A stretch of DNA of 64,000 nucleotides from IMG/VR virus record IMGVR_UViG_3300032782_000001, positions 1-64,000 of that record, one strand, 5' to 3'. The translations under genes and the position numbers were made by a program. This document shows, in pieces, positions 6,433 to 58,610 of this stretch; the first letter of the stretch is position 1, and every line of letters starts with the position of its first letter. Under the pieces are notes generated by a model. The model was not told where the DNA came from. It worked only from the letters and a program-made list of their open reading frames with translations, and made no database searches.

Positions 6433-6693
6433 TCAGCTCGACATGATGTTCCATACGACGAATTCGTTGAAGGAGATTTCACGGATGTCGGGTGGAAGAA
6501 TGGTTCCGTCGTCCATTCTTTTGTAGGTTTTGGAGACTCGTTGCCATTCTTCGGCGCAGGTTGGGCAGCAGCTGAAGGTGTTTTTGGTGGTCAGGCCTTG
6601 GAAGTAGACGGAGGTTGGGTTGGGGCAGGGTCCTTTGAAGGACAGGCAGGATTCTGGGTCCCAGGCGAAGTCTTTGGGGTTTCGGACGGTCAT
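6433..6693 (-). CDS. VMES-tag protein
   Basis: ends EFVVWNIMSS. Confidence 0.8.
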   Translation of the reverse strand: MTVRNPKDFAWDPESCLSFKGPCPNPTSVYFQGLTTKNTFSCCPTCAEEWQRVSKTYKRMDDGTILPPDIREISFNEFVVWNIMSS

Positions 6694-6947
6694 GCGTCCA
6701 TCACTTGGGCGACGAGGAATTCTGCTTCTGAGAGTTCTTCCACTTTAACCCATTGGCCAAGGAATTTCAGATATCGCGGTTTATCGGCGTGGGGGCTGAG
6801 GAATTGGAGTTTTCCGTGGGTGGGGCATCGGGCGAAGGTTCGGATGGTTCGTCCGAACAATGTACCTCGGAAGAATTTTGTGGCGGGTTCGCCGCATTCT
6901 TTTTCCGGGTCTAGCGGGTTTTCTGCGTAGTCGCAGGAGTTCTTCAC
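6690..6947 (-). CDS. VMES-tag protein, Zn-module type
   Basis: CGEPA...RCPTH; ends EFLVAQVMDA. Confidence 0.8.
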   Translation of the reverse strand: MKNSCDYAENPLDPEKECGEPATKFFRGTLFGRTIRTFARCPTHGKLQFLSPHADKPRYLKFLGQWVKVEELSEAEFLVAQVMDA

Positions 6948-7159
6948 GAGTCCATCACCTGTCGGCAGATGAATTCTTCTCGGGAGATTTCAATCGGCTC
7001 CATCGGAGCCCCGCGGATTTCCATCGGAAGCAGTCCGTTTAGGCAACATTGGTTACAAGTTCCCCATACGAACATTTTTCCTTCTTGGCGTTCGTACTGG
7101 AAGAATCGAGAGGCTTCGTTCTGGCAGTCGTCTATGCAGGGGATGGGTTCCGTTTTCAC
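6944..7159 (-). CDS. VMES-tag protein
   Basis: ends EEFICRQVMDS. Confidence 0.8.
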   Translation of the reverse strand: MKTEPIPCIDDCQNEASRFFQYERQEGKMFVWGTCNQCCLNGLLPMEIRGAPMEPIEISREEFICRQVMDS

Positions 7160-7956
7160 GAGTCCATCACTTGGGCGACCAGGTACTCTTCCAGGGAGAT
7201 TTCCTGGATGTCATGTCCTGAATCTCGGGCGTGGTATCCGCATCGGGCCACGTTCAGGCGGGCGATCCTTCCTGAGAATTCGAATTCATCTCGGAAGAAT
7301 CGGACGGCCGGGTTTTGGCATTGTCCGGGGTCCAGTTTTTCCCAGTCGCATGGAATTCGGGGGTTTTCCGCGTCCCAGAGTTTTTGAAGCCTCTCCATTT
7401 CTTTCTGGAGGAGTGCTTGTCCGTCGAGTCCGTAGATCTGGTTGTCGAATTCGATGATTTTTTTCCGGTGTTCGGAGGGTCGGCTTGGGAGGCCCAGCGG
7501 GTTGACCATGAGCCAGTGCAGTTCTTTCGGAATCCGGTTTCCGGGGGAGGTGTCCAGGATGACCGGTTGTGGTCCTTCTCCGTCTTTCGGGTCTCCGTAT
7601 TCTTGACCGTCGTAGACGACCACGGGGAATGCGCCTTGGAGGTTGGGGAAGTGTGGGGAGTATTGGAAGATGTCAATTCGTCCGCATTGGAGCGCCATCC
7701 ATCGGCAGATGGTCCAGATGTATTCCCTTTCCAGGGAGCTACAGTTGTAGTCGAAGCCGATCCTGCACGGTCCGTCGTCGTAGGATAGGCTTTCGTTCGT
7801 CGGCAGTCCGTCTTCCAGTGGACCTCGGTAGTAGACTGGTTGGTCTGCCGGTTTTCCCAGGAGTTCGGGGAATTTCCGCAGGTTCTTTTCCAGGAAGGCG
7901 AGCATTCGCTTTTTGGCGATTTCGCTAGCCATTGGCGCAGTAATGCTGTAGCCCAC
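7156..7956 (-). CDS. VMES-tag protein; unknown domain fused to a Zn module
   Basis: ends CQNPA...RCGYH...EEYLVAQVMDS. Confidence 0.85.
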   Translation of the reverse strand: MGYSITAPMASEIAKKRMLAFLEKNLRKFPELLGKPADQPVYYRGPLEDGLPTNESLSYDDGPCRIGFDYNCSSLEREYIWTICRWMALQCGRIDIFQYSPHFPNLQGAFPVVVYDGQEYGDPKDGEGPQPVILDTSPGNRIPKELHWLMVNPLGLPSRPSEHRKKIIEFDNQIYGLDGQALLQKEMERLQKLWDAENPRIPCDWEKLDPGQCQNPAVRFFRDEFEFSGRIARLNVARCGYHARDSGHDIQEISLEEYLVAQVMDS

Positions 7957-7959
7957 CGT

Positions 7960-8163
7960 TTAGCTCTCCATGACTTGTCGGACGACGAATTCTTCCAGGG
8001 TAACAAGTTTAGATTCCCATCCCTGGATGGAGTGAACTCGACATCTTGAAATGAATAGACGGGATGCTTTGAAGTAGTAGAAGTAAATGGATCTTTTACC
8101 GCACCTCGGTTCCTCGACAAGCCGGTCGGCTCCAGCATCGCACGGAATGAATTCGTCTCTCAT
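7960..8163 (-). CDS. VMES-tag protein, Zn-module type
   Basis: ends EEFVVRQVMES; ATGA overlap. Confidence 0.8.
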   Translation of the reverse strand: MRDEFIPCDAGADRLVEEPRCGKRSIYFYYFKASRLFISRCRVHSIQGWESKLVTLEEFVVRQVMES

Positions 8164-8348
8164 GATTCCATGACTTGTCGGATGACGAATTCTTCTCGTG
8201 AAATTTCTTTCGTATATTTTTCTCGCCGGCAGGTCGGGCAGTGTGAAGCGCAGCGTCCTTTCAATTTCCGGAATTTGGAGATTTGGAAGAATCGGATAGC
8301 TGGCAGTCCGCAGACGTATCCCGGTTGTGTGTAGTCGCAGGTGATCAC
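8160..8348 (-). CDS. VMES-tag protein, Zn-module type
   Basis: ends EEFVIRQVMES; GTGA overlap. Confidence 0.8.
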   Translation of the reverse strand: MITCDYTQPGYVCGLPAIRFFQISKFRKLKGRCASHCPTCRREKYTKEISREEFVIRQVMES

Positions 8349-8650
8349 GGGTTTTCCGGCAGGAATTGCACGTCCACCAGGATGTCCGGGTCCACCCGAG
8401 CGTAGTACCCGTATTCGGCTTTGTCCAACCGATCGTCTCGAATCCCGATATCGCCAAAGCGGCTCACCGACGCGATCAGCACTTTGGAGCCGGCTTTCGC
8501 CATCCGCGTCGTCGTGTGTTCTTCCACCGGATGGGATCCATCCCAGATATGCATTTGGCAGTCCACCAGGAGGGTCGCGGTGGCGAAGTAGCCTTTGACT
8601 TCGAAAGTCGCCTTTCGCCGATACATCTCTTCCAAGATCTTCGCGTCCAT
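8345..8650 (-). CDS. hypothetical protein
   Basis: after cassette at 8652-8695. Confidence 0.8.
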   Translation of the reverse strand: MDAKILEEMYRRKATFEVKGYFATATLLVDCQMHIWDGSHPVEEHTTTRMAKAGSKVLIASVSRFGDIGIRDDRLDKAEYGYYARVDPDILVDVQFLPENP

Positions 8651-8698
8651 CGTCGCCTCCAGATCGCAATACGTCTCGACCTTTCGGATTTCCGTCGA

Positions 8699-8947
8699 TC
8701 AGGAATCCATGACTTCGTGGATTACAAATTCTTCCAGGGTCACCTCGGTCCATCCGCTAACGCCATGTTCATCACATCTGGCGTTGCAGCCCGATCGGAA
8801 GACGTAAAACCTCGTCGCGTCTCGTCCGCACGTCTTATTCACGAGCCACGGATAAGACGTGCGGACGAGACGCGACGAGGTTTTACGTCTTCCGCACGTC
8901 TTATCCGTGGCTCGTGAATAGTGGTCACAAGGGATGAGCCTTGTCAC
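8699..8947 (-). CDS. VMES-tag protein with in-frame inverted duplication
   Basis: ends EEFVIHEVMDS. Confidence 0.75.
   Translation of the reverse strand: MTRLIPCDHYSRATDKTCGRRKTSSRLVRTSYPWLVNKTCGRDATRFYVFRSGCNARCDEHGVSGWTEVTLEEFVIHEVMDS
8796..8894. repeat. 43-bp perfect inverted repeat
   Basis: arms 8796-8838 and 8852-8894. Confidence 0.9.
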
Positions 8948-9291
8948 TCCTGGTTGTACGGGTCCACTCGACATTCCAGCCTCGTCCACACGTCTTGGAA
9001 CCAGGTTTCCATCTTCTCGACCGAATCTCCCTCCCTCAACGATCGGGAGATGTCGAAAAAGTCGTCTTGGTTCCTTCGATAGAACCGGGCTTCGGCAGAG
9101 AAGGCGGTGTCTCCGCCGTAAGGCCGATGATCCCACCAATACACGTGAATGCAGTACAACTTCTTGACGTAGGTCGTGTCTTGGTCGAGGAAACTTCCTC
9201 GGATCCATTTGGACCACAAGCCGTCCGCCTTGTGAGGCTTGGATTCCCGGTACCCGGCTTTTTCGAGATCTGCTTCGGTGATCATCGTCAA
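8944..9291 (-). CDS. hypothetical protein
   Basis: ORF track; overlaps both neighbours by 4 nt. Confidence 0.75.
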   Translation of the reverse strand: MTMITEADLEKAGYRESKPHKADGLWSKWIRGSFLDQDTTYVKKLYCIHVYWWDHRPYGGDTAFSAEARFYRRNQDDFFDISRSLREGDSVEKMETWFQDVWTRLECRVDPYNQE

Positions 9292-9950
9292 ACCTCCACC
9301 ACTTGATATCCGATCTCGCGCGGTTGCCTTTCCTCGTCCAGATAAGCTGAATTGCAGAACTCCATCTCTTGGATGGTTTGGCGACCGAATCCGCCGTGCA
9401 CGTGTCCACTGAGCACGGCTTTCACTCGATGATCCGACTCGTAGAACAGGAAGTTGTACAGGTGAATGTTCCCCCTTTGCAGATCCAGGATCATGCTGGG
9501 CGGACAGTGGGCGAGCAACACGTCCGCCATTTTCAGCTCATCTTGGATCCAACGGAACTCTTGCCACATGTCTTGTGACCGACGTTCCCAGTTCCACTCC
9601 CCTTGAAGGTACGGGATGAAAGGGATCCCGTAGAACGTTCGGTCTTCCCACGTGATCAACTTCTTCGTCACGTTGACGGCGCGGATCCCGCCGGCTTTCA
9701 ACAGATCCTCGACGCGTTCCGGTTCCAGAAAGTCGTGATTTCCCGCCACGAACAGGAACGGCCGGTCTCCAAGCCATTCCTTCAATTTCTTCATCCTCCT
9801 CCGGAGCCAGTCCTCTTGGAACTTGGGCTCGACGGACCAGTCTCCACGCGTCTCGTTCGGCATGAAATCCCCCGAATGGACGACAGGCGCATCCAAATCC
9901 GGCAAATCCGGGAGCCTCCCATGCGTGTCAGAAACGTGGATGAGTTTCAT
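9288..9950 (-). CDS. calcineurin-like metallophosphoesterase
   Basis: motifs SDTH, HSGD, GNHD, GHVH. Confidence 0.9.
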   Translation of the reverse strand: MKLIHVSDTHGRLPDLPDLDAPVVHSGDFMPNETRGDWSVEPKFQEDWLRRRMKKLKEWLGDRPFLFVAGNHDFLEPERVEDLLKAGGIRAVNVTKKLITWEDRTFYGIPFIPYLQGEWNWERRSQDMWQEFRWIQDELKMADVLLAHCPPSMILDLQRGNIHLYNFLFYESDHRVKAVLSGHVHGGFGRQTIQEMEFCNSAYLDEERQPREIGYQVVEV

Positions 9951-9982: not shown

Positions 9983-10225
9983 TTACGCCGACATCACTTC
10001 CCAGACGAGGAATTCTTCTTCAGTTATCCGGATCCATTTGTCTCCCAGGAACCCTGGTTTAAATCTGAGTGAATACTGATGTAGATTGCAAACAGCTGCG
10101 GCCCGATTCCCCGTAGGGCTCAATAGGAAGAAGTGTCTTGCAGGCCCGTTCGGCATCGACCCTTCTTCGCGTCTCTGCGCTTCGCACATCTCGCATTTTC
10201 GGACGCCACTTGTAAAATCTTCCAT
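9983..10225 (-). CDS. VMES-tag protein
   Basis: ends EEEFLVWEVMSA. Confidence 0.75.
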   Translation of the reverse strand: MEDFTSGVRKCEMCEAQRREEGSMPNGPARHFFLLSPTGNRAAAVCNLHQYSLRFKPGFLGDKWIRITEEEFLVWEVMSA

Positions 10226-10442
10226 GTCGTCTGACAATCGGAAAGTTTGTCAGTCTAAACAACCACCCTGCAATGATCCGGCGGTCTTTGTCTATCACTA
10301 CTGGGATCCGCCTCCAGACCATCCCGGCTTGTCTCACCTGCCAAAAGACGACGAGGCCGCATTATGCGCGCGGTTACTGCAATCCCTGCTACCAGCGCGC
10401 CAAGCGGCCTTCAAGAGCTAAGTCGGCTTTCCGTGAGGAATT

Positions 10443-11270: not shown

Positions 11271-11297
11271 TGTAGGCGTGAAGGGAGTCGAACCCTT
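11271..11297 (-). pseudogene. orphan tRNA 3' fragment (T-arm plus acceptor strand)
   Basis: AAGGG-TTCGACT-CCCTT-CACGCCT-ACA; no matching 5' half. Confidence 0.55.
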
Positions 11298-11514
11298 AAG
11301 ACATCATTACTTCATGGACGATGAACTCTGCTCGAGTGAGTTCCTGGACGAATCCCTTCTTGATTTCTTCCAAGAAAGTCGGATCCTCCGCGACGCATCG
11401 TTTGCAGCGGATAATGGGTCGCTTGCTGATGGTTCCTACAAAGAACCGGACGTCCTTGCTCATGCACATCGTGGTTTCCCACCCGAAGGGTACTTGGTTC
11501 TGGCAATAATCCAT
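11296..11514 (-). CDS. VMES-tag protein
   Basis: ends EFIVHEVMMS. Confidence 0.8.
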   Translation of the reverse strand: MDYCQNQVPFGWETTMCMSKDVRFFVGTISKRPIIRCKRCVAEDPTFLEEIKKGFVQELTRAEFIVHEVMMS

Positions 11515-11592
11515 ACTAGTCCCGGAAACCAGCCAATACGACGACCGGCGAATTTGCGCTATTGCCAAGTATGGCTGAGGACAGTTTACAGG

Positions 11593-11667
11593 TGGACCGG
11601 AAGGGATTCGAACCCTCAGTTAGGAAGTTTTTAAAACCTCTGTGTCTGCCTTTTCCACCACCGGTCC
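11593..11667 (-). tRNA. tRNA-Leu(UAA) with short variable loop
   Basis: acceptor GGACCGG/CCGGTCC, Leu-type D arm, anticodon loop TTTAAAA, T loop TTCGAAT, discriminator A. Confidence 0.85.
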
Positions 11668-19224: not shown

Positions 19225-19428
19225 TCAGGACTCCATAGTATCTACGACGATTTCCAAGTTCCTGGCGATCTGTAGCGCTTCGCTGTCAGTGTCGCACCTG
19301 ACAACTACTTCACCTCCCCATGGTGAATCACTCATACTCTGGACCTTCATAGGAATGAACTGCGGCTTCCCAGATCCAGGTATCCTTACGACTGCGTAGA
19401 ATCCTACTTCTTGATCGGAATTTTTCAA
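19225..19428 (-). CDS. VMES-tag protein
   Basis: ends IVVDTMES. Confidence 0.75.
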   Translation of the reverse strand: MKNSDQEVGFYAVVRIPGSGKPQFIPMKVQSMSDSPWGGEVVVRCDTDSEALQIARNLEIVVDTMES

Positions 19429-19628
19429 GATTCCATGACCAAGAAGACCAAGAATTCTTCCTTGGTCATCTTTAGAGAGACGCTCTGACGATAAAGAGGA
19501 ATTCCCATCCCCTCATGTTCAGAACACCGGCTTTGAAAAGGGAACCCGGCAACGCCGCGGTAGAAGTGGGTCCCATCACGTCCGCATATGACGCATTGGC
19601 ACATTTCTTCATCAGTTAGTGTGCTCAT
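19425..19628 (-). CDS. VMES-tag protein, Zn-module type
   Basis: ends EEFLVFLVMES. Confidence 0.8.
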   Translation of the reverse strand: MSTLTDEEMCQCVICGRDGTHFYRGVAGFPFQSRCSEHEGMGIPLYRQSVSLKMTKEEFLVFLVMES

Positions 19629-20102: not shown

Positions 20103-20291
20103 CTACGACTCCATGACCTCGTAGATGAGGCACATGGCGATGAACTCTTCTTGAGAAATGCGTAGATCCATCAAGTCAGGATCGTTATCGATTCGGTTCC
20201 CGAAACAGTCAGCACACCATGCAAACGGCTTCCCGTCGAAGACGAATTCTTCCGCTTCGCGGAGACATTGCCTACAAGGAATAGTGTTCAC
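20103..20291 (-). CDS. VMES-tag protein
   Basis: ends LIYEVMES. Confidence 0.8.
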   Translation of the reverse strand: MNTIPCRQCLREAEEFVFDGKPFAWCADCFGNRIDNDPDLMDLRISQEEFIAMCLIYEVMES

Positions 20292-43063: not shown

Positions 43064-43139
43064 TCTGTTGTAAATTCTGCAAGGCCCGTCGGATCCGCAA
43101 ATTCGGCGGGCCGCGACGTATCTGGATCTGGAGGTGACT

Positions 43140-44919: not shown

Positions 44920-45016
44920 ACACCCCGCTTTCAAACAGACCGAAAGGCCCCGATAGAGCATGCCGTGGCGGCGTAAATTCCCATCGATCGGCCGTACCGA
45001 TCGGTGGAGGTGACAC

Positions 45017-46285
45017 GTGTCCGATCTCATCGAAGGTCAGATCCAATACGTCCAAGGGAGTGGGAAGAAGCCTTATGAGCTCCAGCTCAAAGGCGGCGTC
45101 TACAGCTGCTCTTGCATGGCTTGGCGCAACCAGAGCATCCCCATCAACAAGAGGACGTGCAAGCATCTCAAAATGGTGCGCGGAGACGCCGCCGAACAAG
45201 TGCGCGTCTCCGGAACTTTCCATCAAGCCGGCGTCACGTCGGGCCGCATTCAAACGGCAGTTCCCAACCAGACCAAGCCGCCACGCACCGACCCTGATTA
45301 TGAATTCACGCCGCAAGAAGACGGCCGCATCCCGATCATGACGTCGGACGAGTACGTGGCGGCGCAGCGACAGGCATTGACCCTTCTTGCAGAAGGGTCC
45401 TTTCGGGACAAGGAGTCCGTTCTCGCAGACGCCGAGCTGAAGGCCGGTCGCAAGCTTCGCCCCGACGAGAAGACCAAGCTCTTCGGGCCGCCCGTGCTCC
45501 TCGCGCATCCGTTCGAGGACGCCGAGGGCGTGGACCCGACGGGCTGGTGGATGTCCGAGAAGCTGGATGGGGTGCGCGCTTACTGGGACGGCAAGCAGTT
45601 CCTCTCGCGCCAGGGCAATGTCTTCCACGCGCCAGATTGGTTCAAGGCGGGTCTGCCGGACCATCCGCTCGATGGCGAACTCTGGACGGACCGTCGATCC
45701 TTCCAGCAGACCATCAGCATCGTCAAGTCGATTGATGCGGGTGAGAGGTGGAAGGCCATCAAGTACATGGTCTTCGATCTCCCGCACCTGACCACGCATT
45801 TCGAGCACCGGTACGAGCAGCTCGACAATCTCATGCTCGCCTCCACGAGCAAAGTGCTCAAGATGGTACAGCAGCGCTCATGCACGAGTCTGAACGACCT
45901 CAAGCAGGAACTCGAAAGGGTCGTCAAGCTTGGAGCCGAAGGGCTCATGATCCGCAAGCCCAAAAGCATGTACGAAGCGGGCCGAAGTTGGTCCATCCTG
46001 AAGGTGAAGCCATGGCGTGATTCCGAAGCCACCGTCGTTGGCTATGAGGCCGGAAAGGGTCGTCACAAGGGCAGGACGGGCGGGCTTATCGTCCGGCTCG
46101 ATGTCCCCTTCACCGACCCTCGTCTGAAGCGCGGCGCTGAATTCAATATCGGCACGGGCCTCTCGGACGAAGACCGCCGCAACCCTCCGGCCATTGGGAA
46201 GGTAGTCACGTTCCGCTACATGGACACCACCGATGCGGGGGTCCCGAAGGGCGCCAGCTTCGTCTCAGTGCGGGATTACGAATGA
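45017..46285 (+). CDS. lig: ATP-dependent DNA ligase with N-terminal SWIM finger
   Basis: motif I SEKLDGVR, III LDGEL, IV EGLMIR, V LKVK, OB domain; CSC...CKH at N-terminus. Confidence 0.92.
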   Translation: MSDLIEGQIQYVQGSGKKPYELQLKGGVYSCSCMAWRNQSIPINKRTCKHLKMVRGDAAEQVRVSGTFHQAGVTSGRIQTAVPNQTKPPRTDPDYEFTPQEDGRIPIMTSDEYVAAQRQALTLLAEGSFRDKESVLADAELKAGRKLRPDEKTKLFGPPVLLAHPFEDAEGVDPTGWWMSEKLDGVRAYWDGKQFLSRQGNVFHAPDWFKAGLPDHPLDGELWTDRRSFQQTISIVKSIDAGERWKAIKYMVFDLPHLTTHFEHRYEQLDNLMLASTSKVLKMVQQRSCTSLNDLKQELERVVKLGAEGLMIRKPKSMYEAGRSWSILKVKPWRDSEATVVGYEAGKGRHKGRTGGLIVRLDVPFTDPRLKRGAEFNIGTGLSDEDRRNPPAIGKVVTFRYMDTTDAGVPKGASFVSVRDYE

Positions 46286-46512
46286 CTATGGGCAGTCAAA
46301 AAGCCCCTACCGTGAAATCGACTATTAGGTCCTCTCCACGAGGAGGGAATCAGAACAAGACCAGCACGTTCGTCAACGAACCGGCTGTGGAGATCACCTT
46401 GGCGAATTACCGGCATTCTCAGGTGCTATCCATCAAACAGGCGGAAGTTCTCGCCAAGAAACTCATGAAACTCGTCAACGAACACAAGGTCCGGGAGGTC
46501 ATGGAATCATGA
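46282..46512 (+). CDS. VMES-tag protein
   Basis: ends KVREVMES. Confidence 0.8.
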   Translation: MTMGSQKAPTVKSTIRSSPRGGNQNKTSTFVNEPAVEITLANYRHSQVLSIKQAEVLAKKLMKLVNEHKVREVMES

Positions 46513-46660
46513 GGCGCGAAGAAGACTGTTACCACGACTGGGAGCTCACCTACGCCGACGGCCCGCTCGATACTTCCGACTGGAAGTGCAAATGCTGTGG
46601 GAAGCATGTCGTCGGACAACGAGGGCAAGAGCCTCCTCCTGCCCGCGACAACGAGGAGTC

Positions 46661-46897
46661 ATGAAAGCGATTGCTCCCGAGAGCCTCACGGAGTCTCTCA
46701 ACGAGATCATCTCTACATGCATTCACGGACCTGGAGGTGACCCTGACCGTTGCCATATGAGGGCCGCCGCTAAAGCATTCGTCCTCCTGCGGCGCATGGG
46801 ACTCCCCATCCATGGGGAGGAGGATTATGAAGATCAGCTGAGGAAGTGCAATGCCTCGGAAGTTGACTTCCTGGCAGAAGAAGGGCTCCCCGAATGA
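46661..46897 (+). CDS. hypothetical protein
   Basis: SD GAGGAG; ATGA overlaps. Confidence 0.7.
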   Translation: MKAIAPESLTESLNEIISTCIHGPGGDPDRCHMRAAAKAFVLLRRMGLPIHGEEDYEDQLRKCNASEVDFLAEEGLPE

Positions 46898-47328
46898 AAT
46901 TCTTCGTTCCTGCCTGCGGAGATCGCATCATCCTCATGAAGCCATGGACCTTCCCTCTCTATCTGGAGAAGCGGAACATGCAATTCGCCAAAGTCCGCGG
47001 CTTGGTGGACGCCAAGGCGGATAATTGGATGGGCGTCAGGGAAGGTGATCGTTGGACTGGCAAGTACAAATCTGTAAGCATCACGCTCGGAGCCGGCACG
47101 ATCATCGAGTGTGATCGCATTTATATCCGCACTTTCAACAAGTCCCGGATCCATCTGGAAGAGGATTACGACAGCATTACCTGGAAAGTGACTAATAACG
47201 GGAAAGCCGTTCGACATGGTCGTTTCTGGGTGAAACTCCCAGATTGCTACAATATTGAATTCGAGCTCCAGGTAGACTCTCTCTATCGAGATCGGGTCAA
47301 GGTTGTCAAGGAGGTTATGGAATCGTGA
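46894..47328 (+). CDS. VMES-tag protein
   Basis: ends VVKEVMES. Confidence 0.85.
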   Translation: MKFFVPACGDRIILMKPWTFPLYLEKRNMQFAKVRGLVDAKADNWMGVREGDRWTGKYKSVSITLGAGTIIECDRIYIRTFNKSRIHLEEDYDSITWKVTNNGKAVRHGRFWVKLPDCYNIEFELQVDSLYRDRVKVVKEVMES

Positions 47329-47603
47329 AGCTGTTTCTCCCAACGGGTCGGAGATGCAACTTCAAGGTAGCTCGTGATTCCTCCAATCCACCTTCGAAAC
47401 ATGACGTAAAACTTTGCGGTGAACCAACCATTGCGTATTGGTTAACTAAACCAGATGTTATACCGTTTGACGAACATCATCAATTGGTTAAACGGTGTGA
47501 GGAGCATACTCCTAATACTCGCCATTGGATGAGCTCTCGAGGAGAGTGGTGGTCCGAGATTTCTGAACAAGAACTGATCGTATTGGAGGTGATGGAATCA
47601 TGA
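47325..47603 (+). CDS. VMES-tag protein, Zn-module type
   Basis: ends ELIVLEVMES. Confidence 0.8.
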   Translation: MKLFLPTGRRCNFKVARDSSNPPSKHDVKLCGEPTIAYWLTKPDVIPFDEHHQLVKRCEEHTPNTRHWMSSRGEWWSEISEQELIVLEVMES

Positions 47604-47830
47604 TCAAAGGCAGCCAAATCAATACCGCGTCTCAAGTCGCCCGAGATCTGGAAGAGATCAAGATGAAGATCCGTGATCTCCAGAAGAAACTCGGTTCTGC
47701 GCAGTTGAACGACGACGCGTCGAAGCTTGGCGGTCTTGCCGAGCACTGTTGGGAAATTTCTCATGGTCTCGAACGCAAGGCTCTTGAATCGTTCTTGGCA
47801 GCTCGTCGTGGAGAGGAGCTGCCGCAATGA
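47600..47830 (+). CDS. hypothetical protein
   Basis: ATGA overlaps. Confidence 0.7.
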   Translation: MIKGSQINTASQVARDLEEIKMKIRDLQKKLGSAQLNDDASKLGGLAEHCWEISHGLERKALESFLAARRGEELPQ

Positions 47831-48009
47831 CCAGGAGCCGTCTAGATGATGCTAATGCCTCAAGGCAACGAATGAGTGATGCTGCCAAGAAGGCATTTCT
47901 CGCACGCTTCCGGAAAGAGTGTGTTCGAGGTCTCCGAGGTGGAGTGACCTCAGAAGAGCTGCAACAAGCTCTCGACATGGCCCTTGTCCAAGACGTCCAC
48001 GAATCATGA
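47827..48009 (+). CDS. VMES-tag protein
   Basis: ends LVQDVHES. Confidence 0.8.
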   Translation: MTRSRLDDANASRQRMSDAAKKAFLARFRKECVRGLRGGVTSEELQQALDMALVQDVHES

Positions 48010-51496: not shown

Positions 51497-51925
51497 ATGC
51501 GATTTCAGTTCTTGAGCGTAAGATCTGACGTGGGGCAATATCGTATTGACCCGTCTCTCTTACCGGATTTGAGTGAGTTTGATACTACTAAGCCCGAACT
51601 TCAAACCCCTGCTCTTCCATCAGAGCACGTTTCGATCGTCTCAGACGGTATATTAGGTGAAGAATTCGGTGGTTGTTGGACGGTCGTTGACCGAGGGGAG
51701 CGGAGACCTCCAGGACAAAAACGATATGGGGTTGTGTCGTTTGATCATCAGCCGGCTAGGGTAATCATTCGCCCAGATCCATGGCGAGCAAAGAACGGAG
51801 CCAAGATCACTGTCGATCCCTCATCTCCTCCTGTTATTCTTTCTGAAGGAGGCCCTATGACGTATGAAGAAGCGTGCGAATCTGCTCGCCGCATGAATGA
51901 GATTTTGGAAGTTCACGAGTCTTAA
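51497..51925 (+). CDS. VMES-tag protein
   Basis: ends ILEVHES. Confidence 0.8.
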   Translation: MRFQFLSVRSDVGQYRIDPSLLPDLSEFDTTKPELQTPALPSEHVSIVSDGILGEEFGGCWTVVDRGERRPPGQKRYGVVSFDHQPARVIIRPDPWRAKNGAKITVDPSSPPVILSEGGPMTYEEACESARRMNEILEVHES

Positions 51926-52134
51926 TGCAATTTGAACGCTTCTGTACTCATTATTCCACTAATGACGCCCGGGCTCCTTGCGGTTCTCTAGCGATTTGGG
52001 CTTATGTGAATATGGATGCACCACACCCTTTACGAACTGTCAGTTTCCGCTGTGGTCTACATCTTGTGGATAATACGTTTTTCAGAAAACTTTCCATGGA
52101 AGAATGGCTGATTTTGGAAGTCCACGAATCCTGA
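51925..52134 (+). CDS. VMES-tag protein, Zn-module type
   Basis: ends EEWLILEVHES. Confidence 0.8.
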   Translation: MQFERFCTHYSTNDARAPCGSLAIWAYVNMDAPHPLRTVSFRCGLHLVDNTFFRKLSMEEWLILEVHES

Positions 52135-52400
52135 TGGGCCGATATAACCTTCGCAGCTTTTCTCCGGACGTTCCTGCTTGCTGCGGGGCTCCAGATGACG
52201 ATCCTTGCGGAGAACCATCTTCCGCATTCTTTATTCAAGAAGTTCCTTTAAGGAGTTTTTCTCCTAGGACCACTGCATGGTTCGGTGTATGCGCCGTTTG
52301 TTCATTCAAATGGCGACGCCTGATCGAGAATGAGAAAAAGCTTCGAATTAAAGAAATTTCCTACGAAGAATATATTGTCTACGAGGTCATGGCGTCATGA
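52134..52400 (+). CDS. VMES-tag protein, Zn-module type
   Basis: ends EEYIVYEVMAS. Confidence 0.8.
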   Translation: MGRYNLRSFSPDVPACCGAPDDDPCGEPSSAFFIQEVPLRSFSPRTTAWFGVCAVCSFKWRRLIENEKKLRIKEISYEEYIVYEVMAS

Positions 52401-52430: not shown

Positions 52431-52643
52431 ATGGAGCTGACGTGTGTTAAGCGATTCCCTGATGGTACACGCTGCGGTGCAAAAGCCACCCTCGCGTATT
52501 TGACGACTGAAGGCAAACGGTTCGTCTATCGATGCGAGCAACATCCCATCAACAACAAGAAGCGGGCTTGGAATCAAGAATATATGCAGTGCCGCAAGAT
52601 TCCAATCGAAGAGGCTATCATCATGGAAGTCATGACTGCATGA
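52431..52643 (+). CDS. VMES-tag protein, Zn-module type
   Basis: ends EEAIIMEVMTA. Confidence 0.8.
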   Translation: MELTCVKRFPDGTRCGAKATLAYLTTEGKRFVYRCEQHPINNKKRAWNQEYMQCRKIPIEEAIIMEVMTA

Positions 52644-52849
52644 GTCCGGTCGAAGATTTCGAATGCGTCGTGAATGTGGAGGGAAGGGCCGCTTGCGACA
52701 AGATTGTCAGCGCTGTCCTGTTCCCCACTGACGGTTCCGAGGATCCGTGGCCCGTATGTAAGGACCACATAGATATTAATCTGTACGGCTACGGCCGGCG
52801 TGTGGGGACAATTGAAGAGTTGATCATATTTGAAGTAATGAACTCATGA
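52640..52849 (+). CDS. VMES-tag protein, Zn-module type
   Basis: ends EELIIFEVMNS. Confidence 0.8.
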   Translation: MSPVEDFECVVNVEGRAACDKIVSAVLFPTDGSEDPWPVCKDHIDINLYGYGRRVGTIEELIIFEVMNS

Positions 52850-53205
52850 CTCGGACGATGCACGGGAAGAATCTCAGTGATGATGGGTTTGACTCATACA
52901 TTCAGACCCTTCTCCGTGCAAAATCCCAACCTGACCGAATGCGAACGCTGGAATGGATTATTGAAATCCAGACTTCACGAATACGTGGTATTATCATCCG
53001 GTTCACGTTATACTTTATTCTGAACATTTGTGGGATCTGGTATCTTGGAACCAATTTCGTCAAAGAACCATGCTGGGGTTCTGGAACCGAGTTCGCATTC
53101 CTGGCCATTTTCGGAGGTGTCGTCCTCGTCCATGACTTGTCCAAAATTCGGAACATCAGGAAATCATTGCGGGAAGCAATCGTGGCTTCCGTGATGGAAT
53201 CATGA
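52846..53205 (+). CDS. VMES-tag membrane protein (2 TM)
   Basis: two hydrophobic segments; ends IVASVMES. Confidence 0.8.
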   Translation: MTRTMHGKNLSDDGFDSYIQTLLRAKSQPDRMRTLEWIIEIQTSRIRGIIIRFTLYFILNICGIWYLGTNFVKEPCWGSGTEFAFLAIFGGVVLVHDLSKIRNIRKSLREAIVASVMES

Positions 53206-53208: not shown

Positions 53209-53430
53209 ATGACTGTCCTTTGTACTGAGCCTCGGCTTCCAGGAGAGACTCCGAGTCACGACTGGCAGAAAAAACGTGATTGGCACGGGGACTGGACTGG
53301 AAAATGGATTTGTTCTAATTGCAAGGAAATTCGAACTAACTGTAAACATGCGAATGGCGATTGGACGGGTCTCTTCATGGAAGATTGTCAAGAGCCCGAA
53401 TGTGTAGTTCGTAGTGTGATGGAATCATGA
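53209..53430 (+). CDS. VMES-tag protein, HxW/CxxC type
   Basis: ends VVRSVMES. Confidence 0.8.
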   Translation: MTVLCTEPRLPGETPSHDWQKKRDWHGDWTGKWICSNCKEIRTNCKHANGDWTGLFMEDCQEPECVVRSVMES

Positions 53431-53678
53431 GGACTCTCGATATGGACATCGTCACGCAACGAGAGCACGTAAAAACTTGGTGTGTTATTCGGGTGGATGA
53501 GAAAACCGACGCATATCCTTCTAGGTATGAAGTATTTGGCCTCGGAGATGGACAGACGGCGGAGAGACTAAGGGAAACTGGCTATGCCGAAGAAGTCCTG
53601 ATCGGTTTTCCGGATGAAGAATCGGCTACGGCAGTGGCAGAAAAACTAAACATGATCACCGAAATCATGGAATCATGA
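53427..53678 (+). CDS. VMES-tag protein
   Basis: ends ITEIMES. Confidence 0.8.
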   Translation: MRTLDMDIVTQREHVKTWCVIRVDEKTDAYPSRYEVFGLGDGQTAERLRETGYAEEVLIGFPDEESATAVAEKLNMITEIMES

Positions 53679-53884
53679 GTTTTGTCCGATGCAGCCACAC
53701 TCGGACCGAGAAGGTATTCGAGGGGACTTTCTCTAATGTTGTCCATATCGAACGTTATCAATGCGAAGCTAATGCCATCGTATTCTTCACTCGTGGTGCT
53801 TTCTGCAAAGATCACGAACCGGAATCACTGGATGGTCAAATTTCCTTACAAGAATATGTCGTTCTCGAAGTCATGCGTTCATAA
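53675..53884 (+). CDS. VMES-tag protein, Zn-module type
   Basis: ends EYVVLEVMRS. Confidence 0.8.
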   Translation: MSFVRCSHTRTEKVFEGTFSNVVHIERYQCEANAIVFFTRGAFCKDHEPESLDGQISLQEYVVLEVMRS

Positions 53885-54472: not shown

Positions 54473-55039
54473 GTGTCGCCGGAGATCAAATGCGATCGCG
54501 CCCTCTGGTCTACGGGAGGGAAGATCAGCACATGCGAAAAACCGGCGCATCGCTTTGTAAGCTACTCGGGTCCCCCTGGGGACCCGAGAGCTATGGCGGT
54601 TTGTGACCGCCATGCAGTAGATACAACCCGAATTGGTCCGACCAAGACTCTGACCCGCGAAGAGTTCTTCGTGTTGGCAATTTTAGGTGTTGCGGTGCTT
54701 CCTGAAGAAACCCTTGAAGAAGTTTTCGGCTTCCTTCCATCGGCTTACGATGGGCACCCTATTCTTGAAGATGAAGCTCGAGAAGCCTTGGACTGGTTGA
54801 GAAATCACCGTCAGGCTGCGCTTCGTCCTTCCGAAGAGACCAAAGAAATTTTGTTTTCTTTGACTTCCTCTCCTGGTTATGTCGAAGCCAGAGCCACGTG
54901 GCGAGATCCTCCATATCACGCAATCGAAGATTCCGAGCGTGTTGGCTTCTGGCATGGGATTCCATCGGTTGAGCAACTCTGTGAGGTCCTTCGACGCGTT
55001 TTAAAGACTGCCATCGTAATGCGAGTCATGGAATCATGA
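54473..55039 (+). CDS. VMES-tag fusion protein
   Basis: Zn module, internal TREEFFVLAIL, second domain; ends MRVMES. Confidence 0.8.
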   Translation: MSPEIKCDRALWSTGGKISTCEKPAHRFVSYSGPPGDPRAMAVCDRHAVDTTRIGPTKTLTREEFFVLAILGVAVLPEETLEEVFGFLPSAYDGHPILEDEAREALDWLRNHRQAALRPSEETKEILFSLTSSPGYVEARATWRDPPYHAIEDSERVGFWHGIPSVEQLCEVLRRVLKTAIVMRVMES

Positions 55040-55272
55040 GCTTGAATTACTGCAGTGCTTCCTTCGCTGAAGATCGAACGTTCGGGCCTGTGGTAGGTAG
55101 TCAGATCAAATTCTGCGGTCAGCTTGCCGTTCGTTGGTACATGAGCCGTAGGACCGGTCACATTGCTCAGTTTTGCAATTGTCATGCGAAAGAATATGGA
55201 GACGATGATCCAATTTGGCTTCCTCTATCATCTCAAGATGAAGCCATTGTTGCCGAAGTGATGAATTCATGA
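55036..55272 (+). CDS. VMES-tag protein, Zn-module type
   Basis: ends EAIVAEVMNS. Confidence 0.8.
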   Translation: MSLNYCSASFAEDRTFGPVVGSQIKFCGQLAVRWYMSRRTGHIAQFCNCHAKEYGDDDPIWLPLSSQDEAIVAEVMNS

Positions 55273-55514
55273 ACGCGAACGAACTCATTGCTAAGGCAAA
55301 ACAAGATCTTACCTGCATGCATGCGACCACTTGCATACACACTAAAAACCAGGTCACTTGCGGGAAGCCTGCCACTCGTGCGTTCCGTTTCCCGTTCGGA
55401 AGAATCAAGTGGTATTTGGCCTGTCCAGATCATTCCGAAGGTTCTTGGTGTGATAACGGATGGGAAGAAGTCCCTCTCGGTGAATTCGTAACTTGGGAAA
55501 TTCACGAGTTGTGA
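55269..55514 (+). CDS. VMES-tag protein, Zn-module type
   Basis: ends EFVTWEIHEL. Confidence 0.8.
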   Translation: MNANELIAKAKQDLTCMHATTCIHTKNQVTCGKPATRAFRFPFGRIKWYLACPDHSEGSWCDNGWEEVPLGEFVTWEIHEL

Positions 55515-55738
55515 CAGAACGACCTCCCTGCTCTTGTTTCATCGGAGTAGAGAAATCTCCCGATAGAATGGGATTCTGCATGGAACCTTCCATTCGTTTT
55601 TATCGAGACGGGAGAACAGTCGTTGGCATAATCTCCCGGTGTGGAAATCACCCAATTCCTGTCGATTATCTGCGTGATAATAAAATGGAAGAGGTCACTT
55701 TCGAAGAATATATCGTTAACGAAGTGATGCGTTCGTGA
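55511..55738 (+). CDS. VMES-tag protein, Zn-module type
   Basis: ends EEYIVNEVMRS. Confidence 0.8.
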   Translation: MTERPPCSCFIGVEKSPDRMGFCMEPSIRFYRDGRTVVGIISRCGNHPIPVDYLRDNKMEEVTFEEYIVNEVMRS

Positions 55739-55998
55739 AGTTACTTCACGGAGATACTGAATTCATAGAATGCCGTGGGTCACGGTGGGCACGGGTTGGC
55801 CCTCCGTGTGAAAGTTCCGGGACAATATTTGTAAAGTCGAGAGATTGGGTGGGACCCGGAACGGAAATGGCCAATGTTGAATGGCATGTTTACTGTAAAC
55901 CATGCTGGAATGCTCACAGAAAGAATATGAAGGGACTTGATGAGTTCCAGGTCATGAGTTTCGAAGAATGGATTGTGTCCATAGTGATGGAATCGTGA
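55735..55998 (+). CDS. VMES-tag protein, Zn-module type
   Basis: ends EEWIVSIVMES. Confidence 0.8.
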   Translation: MKLLHGDTEFIECRGSRWARVGPPCESSGTIFVKSRDWVGPGTEMANVEWHVYCKPCWNAHRKNMKGLDEFQVMSFEEWIVSIVMES

Positions 55999-56359: not shown

Positions 56360-56668
56360 ATGATCTCACCGCGAAGTGCTGCGAAAATTCGTGATTTCGG
56401 ACAGGTCTACGGAGTCAGAGGCCCTCGTATGACCAAGCATCGGCTTCTGACTGATGAACTCCGTGTCCGATGTTCCATTCCCGGATGTTTGGAACCGGCT
56501 TGTTATTTTTGGGTTTGTGAGAAGGCTTCTCCGCTCCAAGGCTTGGATATTTGTACGTGGTGTCGAAATCACGTGTTGAAGGTATACCAACCTTCAACCA
56601 ATCATGTTTGGATGTCTGAATCCGTACTCATCGACATCCTGATCGTAATGGAGATCATGGAATCATGA
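56360..56668 (+). CDS. VMES-tag protein, Zn-module type
   Basis: ends IVMEIMES. Confidence 0.75.
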   Translation: MISPRSAAKIRDFGQVYGVRGPRMTKHRLLTDELRVRCSIPGCLEPACYFWVCEKASPLQGLDICTWCRNHVLKVYQPSTNHVWMSESVLIDILIVMEIMES

Positions 56669-56892
56669 AGCAGCGCGTAATCGCGAACGAAGAAAGGTGT
56701 GAATGGCTCGGCCCTTTCCGATTTCATGGCTATCAGGAGAAATGTGGTCGCAGGGCTGTTCGCTTCTATCTTTGCCATGACGGCACTGTCTCTGCTCGTT
56801 GCAAGGGCCACGTTCCTCCTGGCGTTCCCGAATCTATTTCCCAGGAGGATTGGTCTCGTTTGAAAATTGTGTCGGAAATCATGACCGCATGA
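56665..56892 (+). CDS. VMES-tag protein, Zn-module type
   Basis: ends IVSEIMTA. Confidence 0.8.
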   Translation: MKQRVIANEERCEWLGPFRFHGYQEKCGRRAVRFYLCHDGTVSARCKGHVPPGVPESISQEDWSRLKIVSEIMTA

Positions 56893-57356
56893 ACCGTTTG
56901 ATTTGTGATTTGCGGATTTGGACTGATGAGTATCAGTCCAAGAAGTGTGGTCGCGCTGCAGCCTTTTTCTTTGCCGGGTTTGACGTCCACGGCAGACTAA
57001 AAGTTCTCATCCGTTGCCGGTGGTGTGGCGATGTCCAAAAGCATTGGATCCTGGGATCACCTCCCAATCCCGGATTACGATTTCGACAAATTCCTGCATC
57101 ACAAGTTCCTGTTCTTTTGGCAATTTCCGAAATAATTAACACCACGATCGTCCAGGAAATTGCTCGGCCAATCATGCATCGATGGCGCCGGATTCGGAAA
57201 ACTGTCAAAAAACCTGCACATTATAAATGCGATCGATGTGACCGCGTGTGTGAAGGTAATGCCCGACCAACGGATTCTATCATGATGAGAGACCCTGTGA
57301 CAGGTGTCCGGCGAACCTGTGATGAAGAAATTATCGCGGCGGTTATGGAATCATGA
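56889..57356 (+). CDS. VMES-tag protein with two fused modules
   Basis: ends CDEEIIAAVMES. Confidence 0.8.
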   Translation: MNRLICDLRIWTDEYQSKKCGRAAAFFFAGFDVHGRLKVLIRCRWCGDVQKHWILGSPPNPGLRFRQIPASQVPVLLAISEIINTTIVQEIARPIMHRWRRIRKTVKKPAHYKCDRCDRVCEGNARPTDSIMMRDPVTGVRRTCDEEIIAAVMES

Positions 57357-57562
57357 GTAGGACTCGAGATTCAAGCCGGTGTGAACATCGATTTTCTCAG
57401 GAGTCTGCTGCATATAGACTAAAGAATGTCACAGTTCAATCTTGTGATCGATGCAAACTGAATATCTTCCGTTGTTCCCGGTGCAAGCAATTGGTTTTGA
57501 AGGCTCAAAAGTTCCAATGCATCAATAATCTTTGCATTGTAGCCGATATTATGGAATCATGA
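57353..57562 (+). CDS. VMES-tag Cys-rich protein
   Basis: ends IVADIMES. Confidence 0.8.
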   Translation: MSRTRDSSRCEHRFSQESAAYRLKNVTVQSCDRCKLNIFRCSRCKQLVLKAQKFQCINNLCIVADIMES

Positions 57563-57723
57563 GTAACAATGTAATGTCTATGGTGATCAATGGCATGCTC
57601 GGAATTTTCGCAGCAGTTGGATGGGCCCTAGCAATACTGGAACTTGGCGTCATTGTCTTATTTTTCAGTTGGTTCATGAGCGGGGCTTGGTATCGATGGA
57701 AGCATCGAATCCCAAAGTCATAG
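57559..57723 (+). CDS. small membrane protein
   Basis: hydrophobic; ATGA overlap. Confidence 0.65.
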   Translation: MSNNVMSMVINGMLGIFAAVGWALAILELGVIVLFFSWFMSGAWYRWKHRIPKS

Positions 57724-57935
57724 GAGAATGTCCATGGTCCCTTTGGGACGGTCAACATGATTTCCAAGCGGGGGTTCTCGTAAGTCTAGCCCCGGGAGCC
57801 GTCCGGATTTCTTGTTGCTTTTGCGGATTGGAATGGCACCAGTGTCCACACGGTTGGCTTTGGGATTTTGCCACTGATGGCTCTCTTTGTCCCATCTGCG
57901 GACTGAAGATAGTGGAAACGATCATGGAATCATGA
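57696..57935 (+). CDS. VMES-tag Cys-rich protein
   Basis: ends IVETIMES. Confidence 0.7.
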   Translation: MEASNPKVIGECPWSLWDGQHDFQAGVLVSLAPGAVRISCCFCGLEWHQCPHGWLWDFATDGSLCPICGLKIVETIMES

Positions 57936-58159
57936 ACAGTTTTCTTCGAGATCCCAATTCTCCACCTCACCATTGGAAGCGTGTTCCAGGTGATTGGGGT
58001 CGATGGAAATGTGAAAAATGTGAGTCTCTTTACCCGGGTTCACAGAATCCGCATCCTGATCCAAATGCGGACACTCCAGATCCTTACATGAAGTCCTGGT
58101 GTGGAGGTAAATTCTTGAGTTGCGACGAGATTGTAGTCTGGGCAGTCCAAGAAGAATGA
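57932..58159 (+). CDS. VMES-tag protein, HxW/CxxC type (variant)
   Basis: ends CDEIVVWAVQEE. Confidence 0.75.
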   Translation: MNSFLRDPNSPPHHWKRVPGDWGRWKCEKCESLYPGSQNPHPDPNADTPDPYMKSWCGGKFLSCDEIVVWAVQEE

Positions 58160-58365
58160 GAATTACCTGCGAATGGGTAGTAGCTGACTTGACATTTCGT
58201 TGTCCTGAGGACGCCGTAATTGGAATAGTCGGATCCTTTCCTGGTGGGACGATTAGGGAAGTTTACTGTCAGGCTCATTACGAATGTGTGGTCGGTATTC
58301 TCGACAGCTGTTTGGAGACTATGTCTGTAGGTGAGTTTTTGGTTCGAGAAATTCATGATTCTTGA
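58156..58365 (+). CDS. VMES-tag protein, Zn-module type
   Basis: ends EFLVREIHDS. Confidence 0.8.
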   Translation: MRITCEWVVADLTFRCPEDAVIGIVGSFPGGTIREVYCQAHYECVVGILDSCLETMSVGEFLVREIHDS

Positions 58366-58385
58366 TTTCGGCGTAAAATGGGTCT

Positions 58386-58610
58386 GTGATTCCGTCCCAT
58401 AAATGCAATAATTCAGTTCAATTCGGATGGGATGCCGCACTTTGCGGAAGTCTCGCAATTCGAGTCTTCAGGGACCTTCGTCCGCATTCCACTAACGTGA
58501 AATATCTATGCGAACGTTGTTTCAAAGAAGAGCGTGAGAGGCTTCAAAAAGCTGGAATGACCGAAATGTCTTTAGAAGAAGACGTCGTTTATGGGGTCAT
58601 GGAATCATGA
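58386..58610 (+). CDS. VMES-tag protein, Zn-module type
   Basis: ends EEDVVYGVMES. Confidence 0.8.
   Translation: MIPSHKCNNSVQFGWDAALCGSLAIRVFRDLRPHSTNVKYLCERCFKEERERLQKAGMTEMSLEEDVVYGVMES

Follow-up and report, generated by a model that had tools for sequence, protein, structure and literature searches.

The analysed window is a 64,000-nt stretch of a complete 436-kb (436,316 bp) genome from a wetland metagenome. The genome is that of an uncultured phage and contains portal, large terminase and RNR genes. The window holds 30-36 small genes, mostly of 60-100 aa, that encode very divergent copies of an undescribed, putatively zinc-binding protein; about 33 are listed below. They share the scaffold C-x(2-30)-C-x3-A-x2-F-[YF]...(A-R)-C-x2-H, which is followed by E-I-[ST]-x-E-E-[YF]-[IL]-V-x-x-V-M-E-S-stop. 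The latter segment, hereafter the tag, is a short C-terminal helix in the models and is also carried by about 140 otherwise unrelated proteins of the phage. In the list, "module" denotes the putative zinc module.

5761-6105 (+), module and tag (ends AQVMFS), start uncertain; E 1.4e-6 with the tag-less foreign profile described below
6433-6693 (-), module and tag (C-C-C-C variant, ends NIMSS)
6690-6947 (-), module and tag (CGEPA / RCPTH); E 8.6e-11 with the tag-less foreign profile
6944-7159 (-), module and tag (CxxC in place of CxxH)
7156-7956 (-), 266-aa protein with module and tag in the last ~70 aa; best genome match of the family profile, E 1.8e-16
7960-8163 (-), module and tag, 67 aa; the member that was modelled
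8160-8669 (-), module and tag at the C-terminal end, start uncertain
8699-9409 (-), module and tag at the C-terminal end, start uncertain
9983-10237 (-), module and tag (ends EVMSA), last gene before a promoter-like site
11296-11568 (-), module and tag
19425-19628 (-), module and tag
20103-20291 (-), module and tag (CxxC...CxxC variant); family profile E 8.8e-4
25415-25597 (+), module and tag
25594-25794 (+), module and tag
29579-29833 (+), module and tag (ends EIMDS)
42628-42852 (+), module and tag
42854-43063 (+), module and tag (ends EIMKS)
47325-47603 (+), module and tag
51925-52134 (+), module and tag (CGSLA / RCGLH, ends EVHES)
52134-52400 (+), module and tag; synonymous SNP at 52190
52431-52643 (+), module and tag (CGAKA / RCEQH)
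52640-52849 (+), module and tag, divergent; family profile E 9.6e-4
53675-53884 (+), module and tag
54473-55039 (+), 188-aa protein with the module at the N-terminal end, about 130 further residues, and the tag only at the very end
55036-55272 (+), module and tag
55269-55514 (+), module (CGKPA / ACPDH) with a deviant end, WEIHEL
55493-55738 (+), module and tag, TTG start uncertain; two synonymous SNPs
55735-55998 (+), module and tag (CxxC then H)
56360-56668 (+), module and tag (ends EIMES)
56665-56892 (+), module and tag (CGRRA / RCKGH, ends EIMTA)
56889-57356 (+), 155-aa protein with the module at the N-terminal end and CxxC...C plus tag at the C-terminal end
58120-58365 (+), module and tag (ends EIHDS)
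58386-58610 (+), module and tag (CGSLA, CxxC)

The existence of such a family, as put forward in the original prediction, is confirmed, and all five motif pairs given there as examples are present (6690-6947, 51925-52134, 52431-52643, 55269-55514 and 56665-56892). Several details differ. The prediction counted 25-30 proteins between 6433 and 58610, while we find 30-36, one of which (5761-6105) lies just outside this range. The 52-kb range also holds many unrelated genes. Several members are longer proteins that carry the module at one end (7156-7956, 8160-8669, 8699-9409, 54473-55039 and 56889-57356). The sequence between the ligands had been described as essentially unrelated, but more than the four ligands is conserved: G-[KR]-P-A-[TV]-[RH]-F-[YF], A-R before the third Cys, and E-I-[ST] before the helix.

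In an alignment of 30 window members, the first and third Cys are invariant and the second is nearly so. In 137 family sequences, mostly from other metagenomes, C8 is conserved in 131/131, C21 in 137/137, C41 in 137/137 and H44 in 133/137 (with 2 Cys substitutions), as expected for a generic single-zinc structural module, a small domain with four invariant Cys/His positions that lacks a large hydrophobic core. A six-frame search with the family profile gives 40 matches in the genome, 36 of them in the window. A profile built only from foreign sequences, with the tag removed, recovers 28 ORFs at E<0.01. Of these, 25 carry the tag, against a background of 147 tagged among 5814 ORFs, and 26 lie in the window. 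A search of 1.84 billion public metagenome proteins at E<=1e-3 gives 622 cluster representatives, all short and all matched up to their own C-terminus, and arrays of the same kind lie on other metagenome contigs of 40-60% GC. The family has no match in Pfam, PHROG, PDB or GenBank phages (the latter by tblastn), and the phage is known only from metagenomes. No member is fused to a domain of known function.

AlphaFold2 models the 7960-8163 protein with pLDDT 88 and pTM 0.71, as a three-stranded sheet (strands 27-31, 36-40 and 52-54) and a C-terminal helix (56-66), which is the tag. The tag had been described as directly following the scaffold, which understates the structure: in the model it is the C-terminal helix of the fold and not a loose appendage. 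The best structural neighbour is Pfam DUF7455 (PF24254), small proteins of unknown function from actinobacteriophages and Actinomycetota, with TM 0.61 by the query, 52 residues aligned and rmsd 2.2 in the ESM Atlas, and with several BFVD hits. The Foldseek E-values are not significant, however, and a C-terminal VMES helix is not known in DUF7455. A Pfam scan of 30 members listed only five families, each matched by one member (best E 0.011), and DUF7455 was not among them. B-box and ZZ type fingers, which also combine a small sheet, zinc and a helix, are the weak best hits among solved structures (Z 2.1-3.2, at noise level). Cross-brace fingers of the B-box, ZZ and RING types bind two zinc ions through seven or eight ligands, while only four positions are conserved here. 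The family is not a classical, rubredoxin-like zinc ribbon with two CxxC/CPxCG knuckles at the tips of two hairpins, since the first two ligands are 2-30 residues apart (median 11), only one C-x2-H knuckle is present and no zinc-ribbon Pfam model matched.

The four ligand positions and a small aromatic core are nearly invariant, while the other alignment columns have entropy near 4 bits. The three loops measure 2-30, 11-40 and 8-35 residues. The best paralogue identity is 30-45%, and with the tag cut off, BLAST at E<1e-3 links only 5 pairs among 142 tagged proteins. The pI ranges from 4.7 to 8.7, which suggests varied targets. The family profile gives 40 copies in this phage, 10 in its complete 393-kb relative and 1 in a 193-kb relative, while backbone genes are 45-60% identical. 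Neutral decay, which would have spoken against the original prediction, is unlikely: all copies are open, the ligands are kept across the 622 clusters, and three of the 4 SNPs seen in a second sample are synonymous in the predicted frames, although this polymorphism sample is tiny.

It is possible that the family is an expansion of sequence-specific DNA- or RNA-binding zinc-finger regulators, although we consider this unlikely. The closest precedent is the lineage-specific expansion of a zinc ribbon in Bacillus phage G (about 35 copies; Iyer et al. 2021, PMC7824862), where a huge phage also carries tens of copies of a small zinc-binding protein of unknown role, interpreted as an adaptation for regulation or conflict. 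Conserved basic positions flank the ligands ([KR] after the second Cys, [RH] before F-Y and R before the third Cys), and the neighbours are DNA-metabolism genes (ligase, BRCT, HNH and PLD nuclease). However, the net charge is not uniformly basic, with a median pI of 6.0 and many acidic members, the variable parts are loops of changing length rather than a recognition helix, and no similarity to known DNA-binding zinc fingers was found. Judged without a sequence comparison, the phage G proteins have a different ligand pattern, with two CxxC knuckles rather than C, C, CxxH, and the present family always ends in a conserved C-terminal helix that other families share.

The tag is fixed to the extreme C-terminus. 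VMES occurs 63 times in all ORFs, and 58 of these are at the very C-terminus, where 0.03 are expected. One alternative is that the tag is a nucleotide signal, a Shine-Dalgarno or coupling element for the next gene read in a fixed frame, so that the small ORFs need not be real proteins. Indeed, 63 of 142 tagged genes overlap the next start by ATGA or GTGA, and GAG-GTG-ATG would spell the strong SD GGAGGTGA that precedes the first genes of operons. This reading is already contradicted by codon usage. Val, Glu and Ser codons follow the genome's usage, GTC is more frequent than GTG at Val -4 and GAA more frequent than GAG, and only 15 of 142 tags contain an SD-like 4-mer. The remaining 79 tagged genes are not overlapped by a downstream start, and they use all six Ser codons and the stops TGA, TAA and TAG. 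Residues -7 to -13 are also conserved as amino acids. The tag is therefore a protein-level feature.

The tag is shared by proteins that otherwise have little in common, including membrane proteins and 150-300-aa helical proteins. A profile comparison with a second, non-homologous zinc family (HxW-CxxC-C) aligns only the last 15 columns (probability 91%), and this second family also models as a sheet plus terminal helix. The tag is also clade-specific: the two relatives, which have different gene sets, contain 66 and 29 tag-like ORFs, while the nearest GenBank huge phages have none, and more distant huge phages lack both tag and family.

While these results indicate a shared module, the helix is part of the fold, with high confidence, in both models, and its conservation could be structural only. 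In this view, which appears unlikely but not negligible, the helix is merely the best-conserved core element of an ancient sheet-plus-helix mini-domain that has diverged beyond recognition, there is no common partner and each protein acts on its own. The helix is largely hydrophobic, and Cys-poor tagged proteins also look like small sheet-plus-helix proteins. On the other hand, the polar end E-S has no obvious core role yet is conserved, and in 54473-55039, where the module is N-terminal, VMES still sits at the end of the protein. These observations, together with the C-terminal position, the occurrence in membrane and helical proteins and the profile comparison, argue against a purely structural role.

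The tag might instead be a packaging signal, so that tagged proteins would be loaded into the large capsid and ejected with the DNA. This reading is improbable on present evidence, but is compatible with a binder function. Unrelated, fast-evolving small proteins that share only a short terminal peptide match the pattern in phage T4, where hypervariable and otherwise unrelated small internal proteins share only a short terminal capsid-targeting sequence, and at least one of them (IPI*) counters a host defence. The conservation of the tag across phages of 40-60% GC favours a phage-encoded reader, and the ending [VI]-M-E-S resembles the hydrophobic-x-Glu sites of T4-type prohead proteases. The T4 signal, however, is N-terminal, is cleaved off at a prohead-protease site and marks a handful of proteins, while the tag is C-terminal, helical, part of the predicted fold and found on about 140 proteins, a number of cargo species far beyond any known case. 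Tagged proteins include ones with two membrane segments (52846-53205 and 58909-59193), and the tagged genes lie in blocks of their own, partly behind a promoter-like motif that is confined to about 50 kb and absent from the structural region. Encapsulin cargo-loading and microcompartment encapsulation peptides are likewise short C-terminal peptides or helices that serve as portable addresses on unrelated cargo and bind the inside of a protein shell, including HK97-fold shells. They have no sequence likeness to the tag, which is packed against its own domain in the models.

A C-terminal degron that gives accessory proteins a short, programmed lifetime is very unlikely. Most known readers of free C-termini in bacteria are proteases or their adaptors, and the phage encodes no ClpP, Lon or S41 protease of its own, so that a host enzyme would have to be used. 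However, ssrA-like degrons are unstructured tails with non-polar ends such as LAA, while the consensus end V-M-E-S is polar and acidic and is modelled as a packed helix, and there is no evidence of instability.

We tentatively favour a model in which the proteins are a repertoire of variable binding modules, used in host take-over or counter-defence. Each would consist of a module of about 50 residues, in which three Cys and one His most likely hold one zinc ion and a few aromatic residues (A-x2-F-Y, and [VL][IF] on the second strand) form the three-stranded sheet, completed by the C-terminal helix. The first knuckle loop, the hairpin tip and the linker after the His differ freely in length and sequence, so that each paralogue would present a different surface on the same frame. 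The terminal helix, as the one constant surface, would tie the modules to one common partner, either a phage-encoded reader or a conserved host machine. The analysis itself establishes the family, its scaffold and hypervariability, selection for the scaffold, the protein-level nature and C-terminal position of the tag, and its conservation in a clade of huge phages. Zinc binding is inferred from the ligand pattern and a predicted model, without inspection of its coordinates; the binding function, any target or link to host defence and the existence of a common partner are inferences as well. No partner was identified, and neither experiment nor expression data (no RNA run was listed) bears on the model. 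The original interpretation, a fixed metal-stabilised scaffold with diversified loops that resembles a binder repertoire, for example against host defence proteins, is thus partly supported: the scaffold and the loops hold, while the function remains inferential.

A broader possibility, which we regard as less likely than not, is that a clade of huge soil and wetland phages uses a protein address code. The portable helix ending in V-M-E-S would mark a quarter or more of the phage's genes, including at least two non-homologous zinc families, membrane proteins and larger proteins, and a dedicated reader would recognise it and sort, load, assemble or remove these proteins as a class. The zinc-module family would be the variable 'warhead' set of this system.

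Huge phages are full of small genes that nobody can name. Here, about 140 of them in one genome can be grouped by a single short C-terminal signature, and the largest group has a clear, confidently modelled putative zinc scaffold with free loops. If the tag has a reader, it would be the first class-wide protein address signal described in a phage, and would offer one peptide with which to pull out the partner and follow a quarter of the phage's proteome. If the scaffold is a binder frame, the family would be a natural library, with hundreds of distinct versions in public metagenomes, of very small, metal-stabilised binding proteins that may be directed at host take-over or defence targets, which would be of interest for work on phage-host conflict and protein engineering. 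If neither holds, the family still defines a new domain that current annotation libraries miss.

The window comprises the first 64 kb of a single 436,316-bp contig that encodes a portal protein, a large terminase, ribonucleotide reductase, a RecD/Dda-type helicase and collagen-like fibre proteins, identifying it as a huge phage. The source collection rates the contig as complete. However, the 'terminal repeat' is only a 127-bp assembly overlap, so the contig start is arbitrary and the position of the window says nothing about early injection. The DNA originates from a wetland metagenome, and a second wetland sample holds a strain more than 99% identical. By large terminase, the nearest GenBank records are an uncultured 485-kb phage (40% identity) and Tunturiibacter phage Tunturi_5 (28%), while a megablast of 20 kb against GenBank phages found no match. 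Acidobacteriota are suggested as candidate hosts only by the 28% terminase match to Tunturi_5. Recognisable window genes are a MoxR-type AAA ATPase, a DUF2201/VWA protein (29900-31384) and four further genes interspersed with the tagged arrays. In the first 4 kb (1-4000), with 60% GC and many overlapping long ORFs on both strands, gene calls are uncertain. Non-family features of the window discussed here are:

33018-33374, 45017-46285, 60832-61143 and 63267-63893 (all +): a stand-alone BRCT domain, an ATP-dependent DNA ligase, an HNH protein and a PLD-like nuclease; all are conserved in the 393-kb relative, BRCT and the ligase also in the 193-kb one
11591-11667 (-): a tRNA-Leu (anticodon TAA) among the small tagged genes
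5438-5638 (-), 27155-27379 (+), 59190-59378 (+), 62170-62358 (+) and 63015-63233 (+): members of a second tagged zinc family
52846-53205 (+) and 58909-59193 (+): small tagged proteins with two predicted membrane segments
53427-53678 (+): a Cys-poor tagged protein
23974-24801, 24803-25360, 40893-41723 and 43134-44084 (all +): tagged proteins of 170-320 aa with a longer shared C-terminus

About 80 ORFs in the window and about 145 in the genome end in [ILV]-V-x-[EQD]-[VI]-[MH]-[ED]-S-stop. VMES occurs 63 times in all six-frame ORFs and sits at the very C-terminus in 58 of these, where 0.03 are expected. The recurrent PGDP/PGEP C-termini resemble a second tag, but are spurious ORFs in antisense frames of the collagen-like repeats of a 2430-aa gene (genome 303504-310796, minus strand).

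The signal acts at the protein level. Val at -4 is encoded by GTC, GTG, GTA or GTT, and Glu by GAA or GAG. In the 79 tagged genes that are not overlapped by a downstream start, Ser uses all six codons in roughly background proportions and the stop is TGA, TAA or TAG. The excess of TCA-TGA is confined to the 63 genes whose stop overlaps the next start as ATGA, and only 15 of 142 tags contain an SD-like 4-mer. We therefore reject a Shine-Dalgarno or coupling signal, although GAG-GTG-ATG does resemble the strong SD GGAGGTGA found before first genes of operons. The reading of the tag as a nucleotide signal is thus contradicted.

While a sigma-70 promoter scan found no more than chance, a composite promoter-like motif can be observed, CG[TC]AA[AG]TTCG-N9-13-CGTA[TC]-N8-10-GGAGGTGAC-N2-5-ATG, always oriented with the genes. 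In the window it lies within 155-44981 (for example 9978-, 12507-, 13267-, 23086+, 25845+, 35250+, 43096+ and 44972+), and it is also present at genome position 430771-. Matches to CGTAAATTCG with at most one mismatch number 21, against 3.9 expected. The composite form occurs 23 times in the genome, all between 430 kb and 45 kb on the circular map, and precedes MoxR, VWA, ligase and several tagged operons. GC content drops from about 55% to about 48% where the motif stops (~45000-48000). The long plus-strand array of tagged genes from 46 kb onward lacks the motif, so the tagged genes belong to at least two predicted expression blocks.

The observation behind the original prediction held, and all five examples given there are present. 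Thirty window members align with invariant C1 and C3 and nearly invariant C2. A profile of these found 622 representatives of 50%-identity clusters at E<=1e-3 among 1.84 billion proteins; all listed hits are short and are matched up to their own C-terminus. In an alignment of 137 such sequences the ligand columns are C 131/131, C 137/137, C 137/137 and H 133/137. Also conserved are G-[KR]-P-A-[TV]-[RH]-F-[YF] after C2, A-R before C3, and E-I-[ST]-x-E-E-[YF]-[IL]-V-x-[EQ]-V-M-E-S at the end, while most other columns have entropy near 4 bits. Spacers range over 2-30 (C1-C2), 11-40 (C2-C3) and 8-35 residues (His to tag).

To separate the module from the tag, we cut the profile before the last strand and removed every row from this genome. 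This profile still finds 28 ORFs at E<0.01, of which 25 carry the tag and one more a deviant tag, against 147 tagged among 5814 ORFs. Twenty-six of the 28 lie in the window. The full profile finds 40 places in this genome (36 in the window), 10 in the complete 393-kb relative and 1 in a 193-kb relative. The module is therefore a true homologous family, which is strongly expanded in this phage and is essentially always combined with the tag.

AlphaFold2 prediction of the 67-aa member at 7960-8163, with the 137-row alignment, gives a mean pLDDT of 88 and a pTM of 0.71. It places strands at residues 27-31, 36-40 and 52-54 and a helix at 56-66, which is the tag. It is possible that the role of this helix is purely structural, and this reading cannot be excluded. 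Foldseek and VIA searches of PDB, BFVD, AlphaFold DB clusters and the ESM Atlas, including an exhaustive alignment against PDB, gave no significant match. The weak neighbours are B-box/ZZ fingers (Z up to 3.2) and the uncharacterised DUF7455 of actinobacteriophages (TM 0.61 by the query). An ESM Atlas feature search scored below its meaningful range. None of the 30 members scanned matched a Pfam or PHROG family at a meaningful score, and Pfam scans of 20 larger or other tagged proteins gave nothing useful. A PDB sequence search with the family gave no match, nor did tblastn of a family member against GenBank phages.

The family is hypervariable and turns over rapidly. With the last 13 residues removed, BLAST at E<1e-3 links only 5 pairs among 142 tagged proteins, and the best paralogue identities, tag included, are 30-45%. 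Backbone genes (MoxR, VWA, ligase, BRCT and others) are 45-60% identical and syntenic between this phage and its 393-kb and 193-kb relatives, while the small tagged genes between them are not alignable. Ten sampled family clusters at 90% identity are singletons or pairs from JGI, ENA, NCBI or Logan assemblies, all named 'hypothetical' where named at all. Contigs of 40%, 56% and 60% GC carry the same kind of array with the same tag. The pI of family members ranges from about 4.7 to 8.7. All copies are open reading frames, and most starts overlap the preceding stop by 4 nt. The strain in the second sample shows only 4 SNPs in 6 kb, of which 3 are synonymous in the predicted frames, too few for a selection test.

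The tag is shared by non-homologous domains. A second cysteine-rich class, with the pattern M-x2-H-x-W...CxxCG...[DE]-C-x3-V-x2-V-M-E-S, has 55 members across the three phages, including loci L001-L004 and the G001 and G003 loci (L and G numbers are our labels for loci and genomes). It is predicted to form three strands plus a terminal helix that starts at the last Cys (pLDDT 82). A profile-profile comparison of the two classes aligns only the last 15 columns (probability 91%). The tag also ends the proteins with two predicted membrane segments (also L080:4345-4599), where it follows a basic stretch, suggesting that it faces the cytoplasm. It further ends Cys-free small proteins. Cys-poor tagged proteins (also L027:2296-2718 and 3215-3427, and L019:8965-9165, minus strand) follow the pattern W-x-V-V-x-D-x2-G-H-H-R...P-x-G-W...tag, which is reminiscent of MbtH-like sheet-plus-helix proteins, although this is a resemblance only. 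Proteins of 150-320 aa without any Pfam domain carry the tag as well. Those of 170-320 aa (also G001 L020:2475-4293) share the longer C-terminus [ST]-x-E-[DE]-h-h-x2-W-x4-V-x2-V-M-E-S, occur in tandem and are conserved with the tag in relatives. In 54473-55039 the zinc module is N-terminal and is followed by its own T-R-E-E-F-F-V helix start, but V-M-E-S occurs only at the end of the 188-aa protein. This suggests two layers: a helix that completes small folds, and a terminal signature that must sit at the free C-terminus.

A degenerate DNA pattern for the tag found multiple hits in three IMG/VR contigs, against zero for the reversed control. The 393-kb relative has 66 tag-like ORFs and the 193-kb fragment has 29. 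The 485-kb GenBank phage has 2, which is background, Tunturi_5 has none, and neither has the family. The tag and the family are therefore traits of one clade of uncultured huge phages.

Expansions of small zinc proteins in huge phages are known in principle, and nucleic-acid-binding regulators, as proposed for the zinc-ribbon expansion of phage G, cannot be excluded as an alternative. The present family, however, is not in Pfam, PHROGs, PDB or GenBank phages. Literature searches for the motif or for a comparable phage-wide tag found no report of a phage in which about a quarter of the genes share a C-terminal peptide. A reading of the tag as an address code remains possible, and would be the larger novelty.

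Our results demonstrate a new family defined by its zinc-ligand pattern, a fixed scaffold with free loops, a strong lineage-specific expansion with rapid turnover, and a protein-level C-terminal signature shared across unrelated proteins. In contrast, the function is inferred, as are metal binding and the existence of a common partner. The original interpretation of a constant metal-stabilised scaffold with diversified loops, resembling a binder repertoire, is thus supported only in part. It cannot be excluded that the tagged proteins are packaged and ejected, or that the tag is a degron.

The search for a reader of the tag did not identify one. The phage has no ClpP, Lon_C or Peptidase_S41. 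A complex prediction of the neighbouring DUF2201/VWA protein with a family member returned a score of 0.00, which is not evidence either way. A comparative screen for genes present in the tag-bearing relatives and absent from a tag-less huge phage left 138 candidates, too many to be useful. Because the tag is the same in phages of 40-60% GC, the partner should be phage-encoded or a very conserved host machine. The pattern of one constant surface plus many variable ones, in fast-evolving accessory genes of a virus, fits adaptor-like binders that would be used in host take-over or counter-defence and joined by the tag to one partner.
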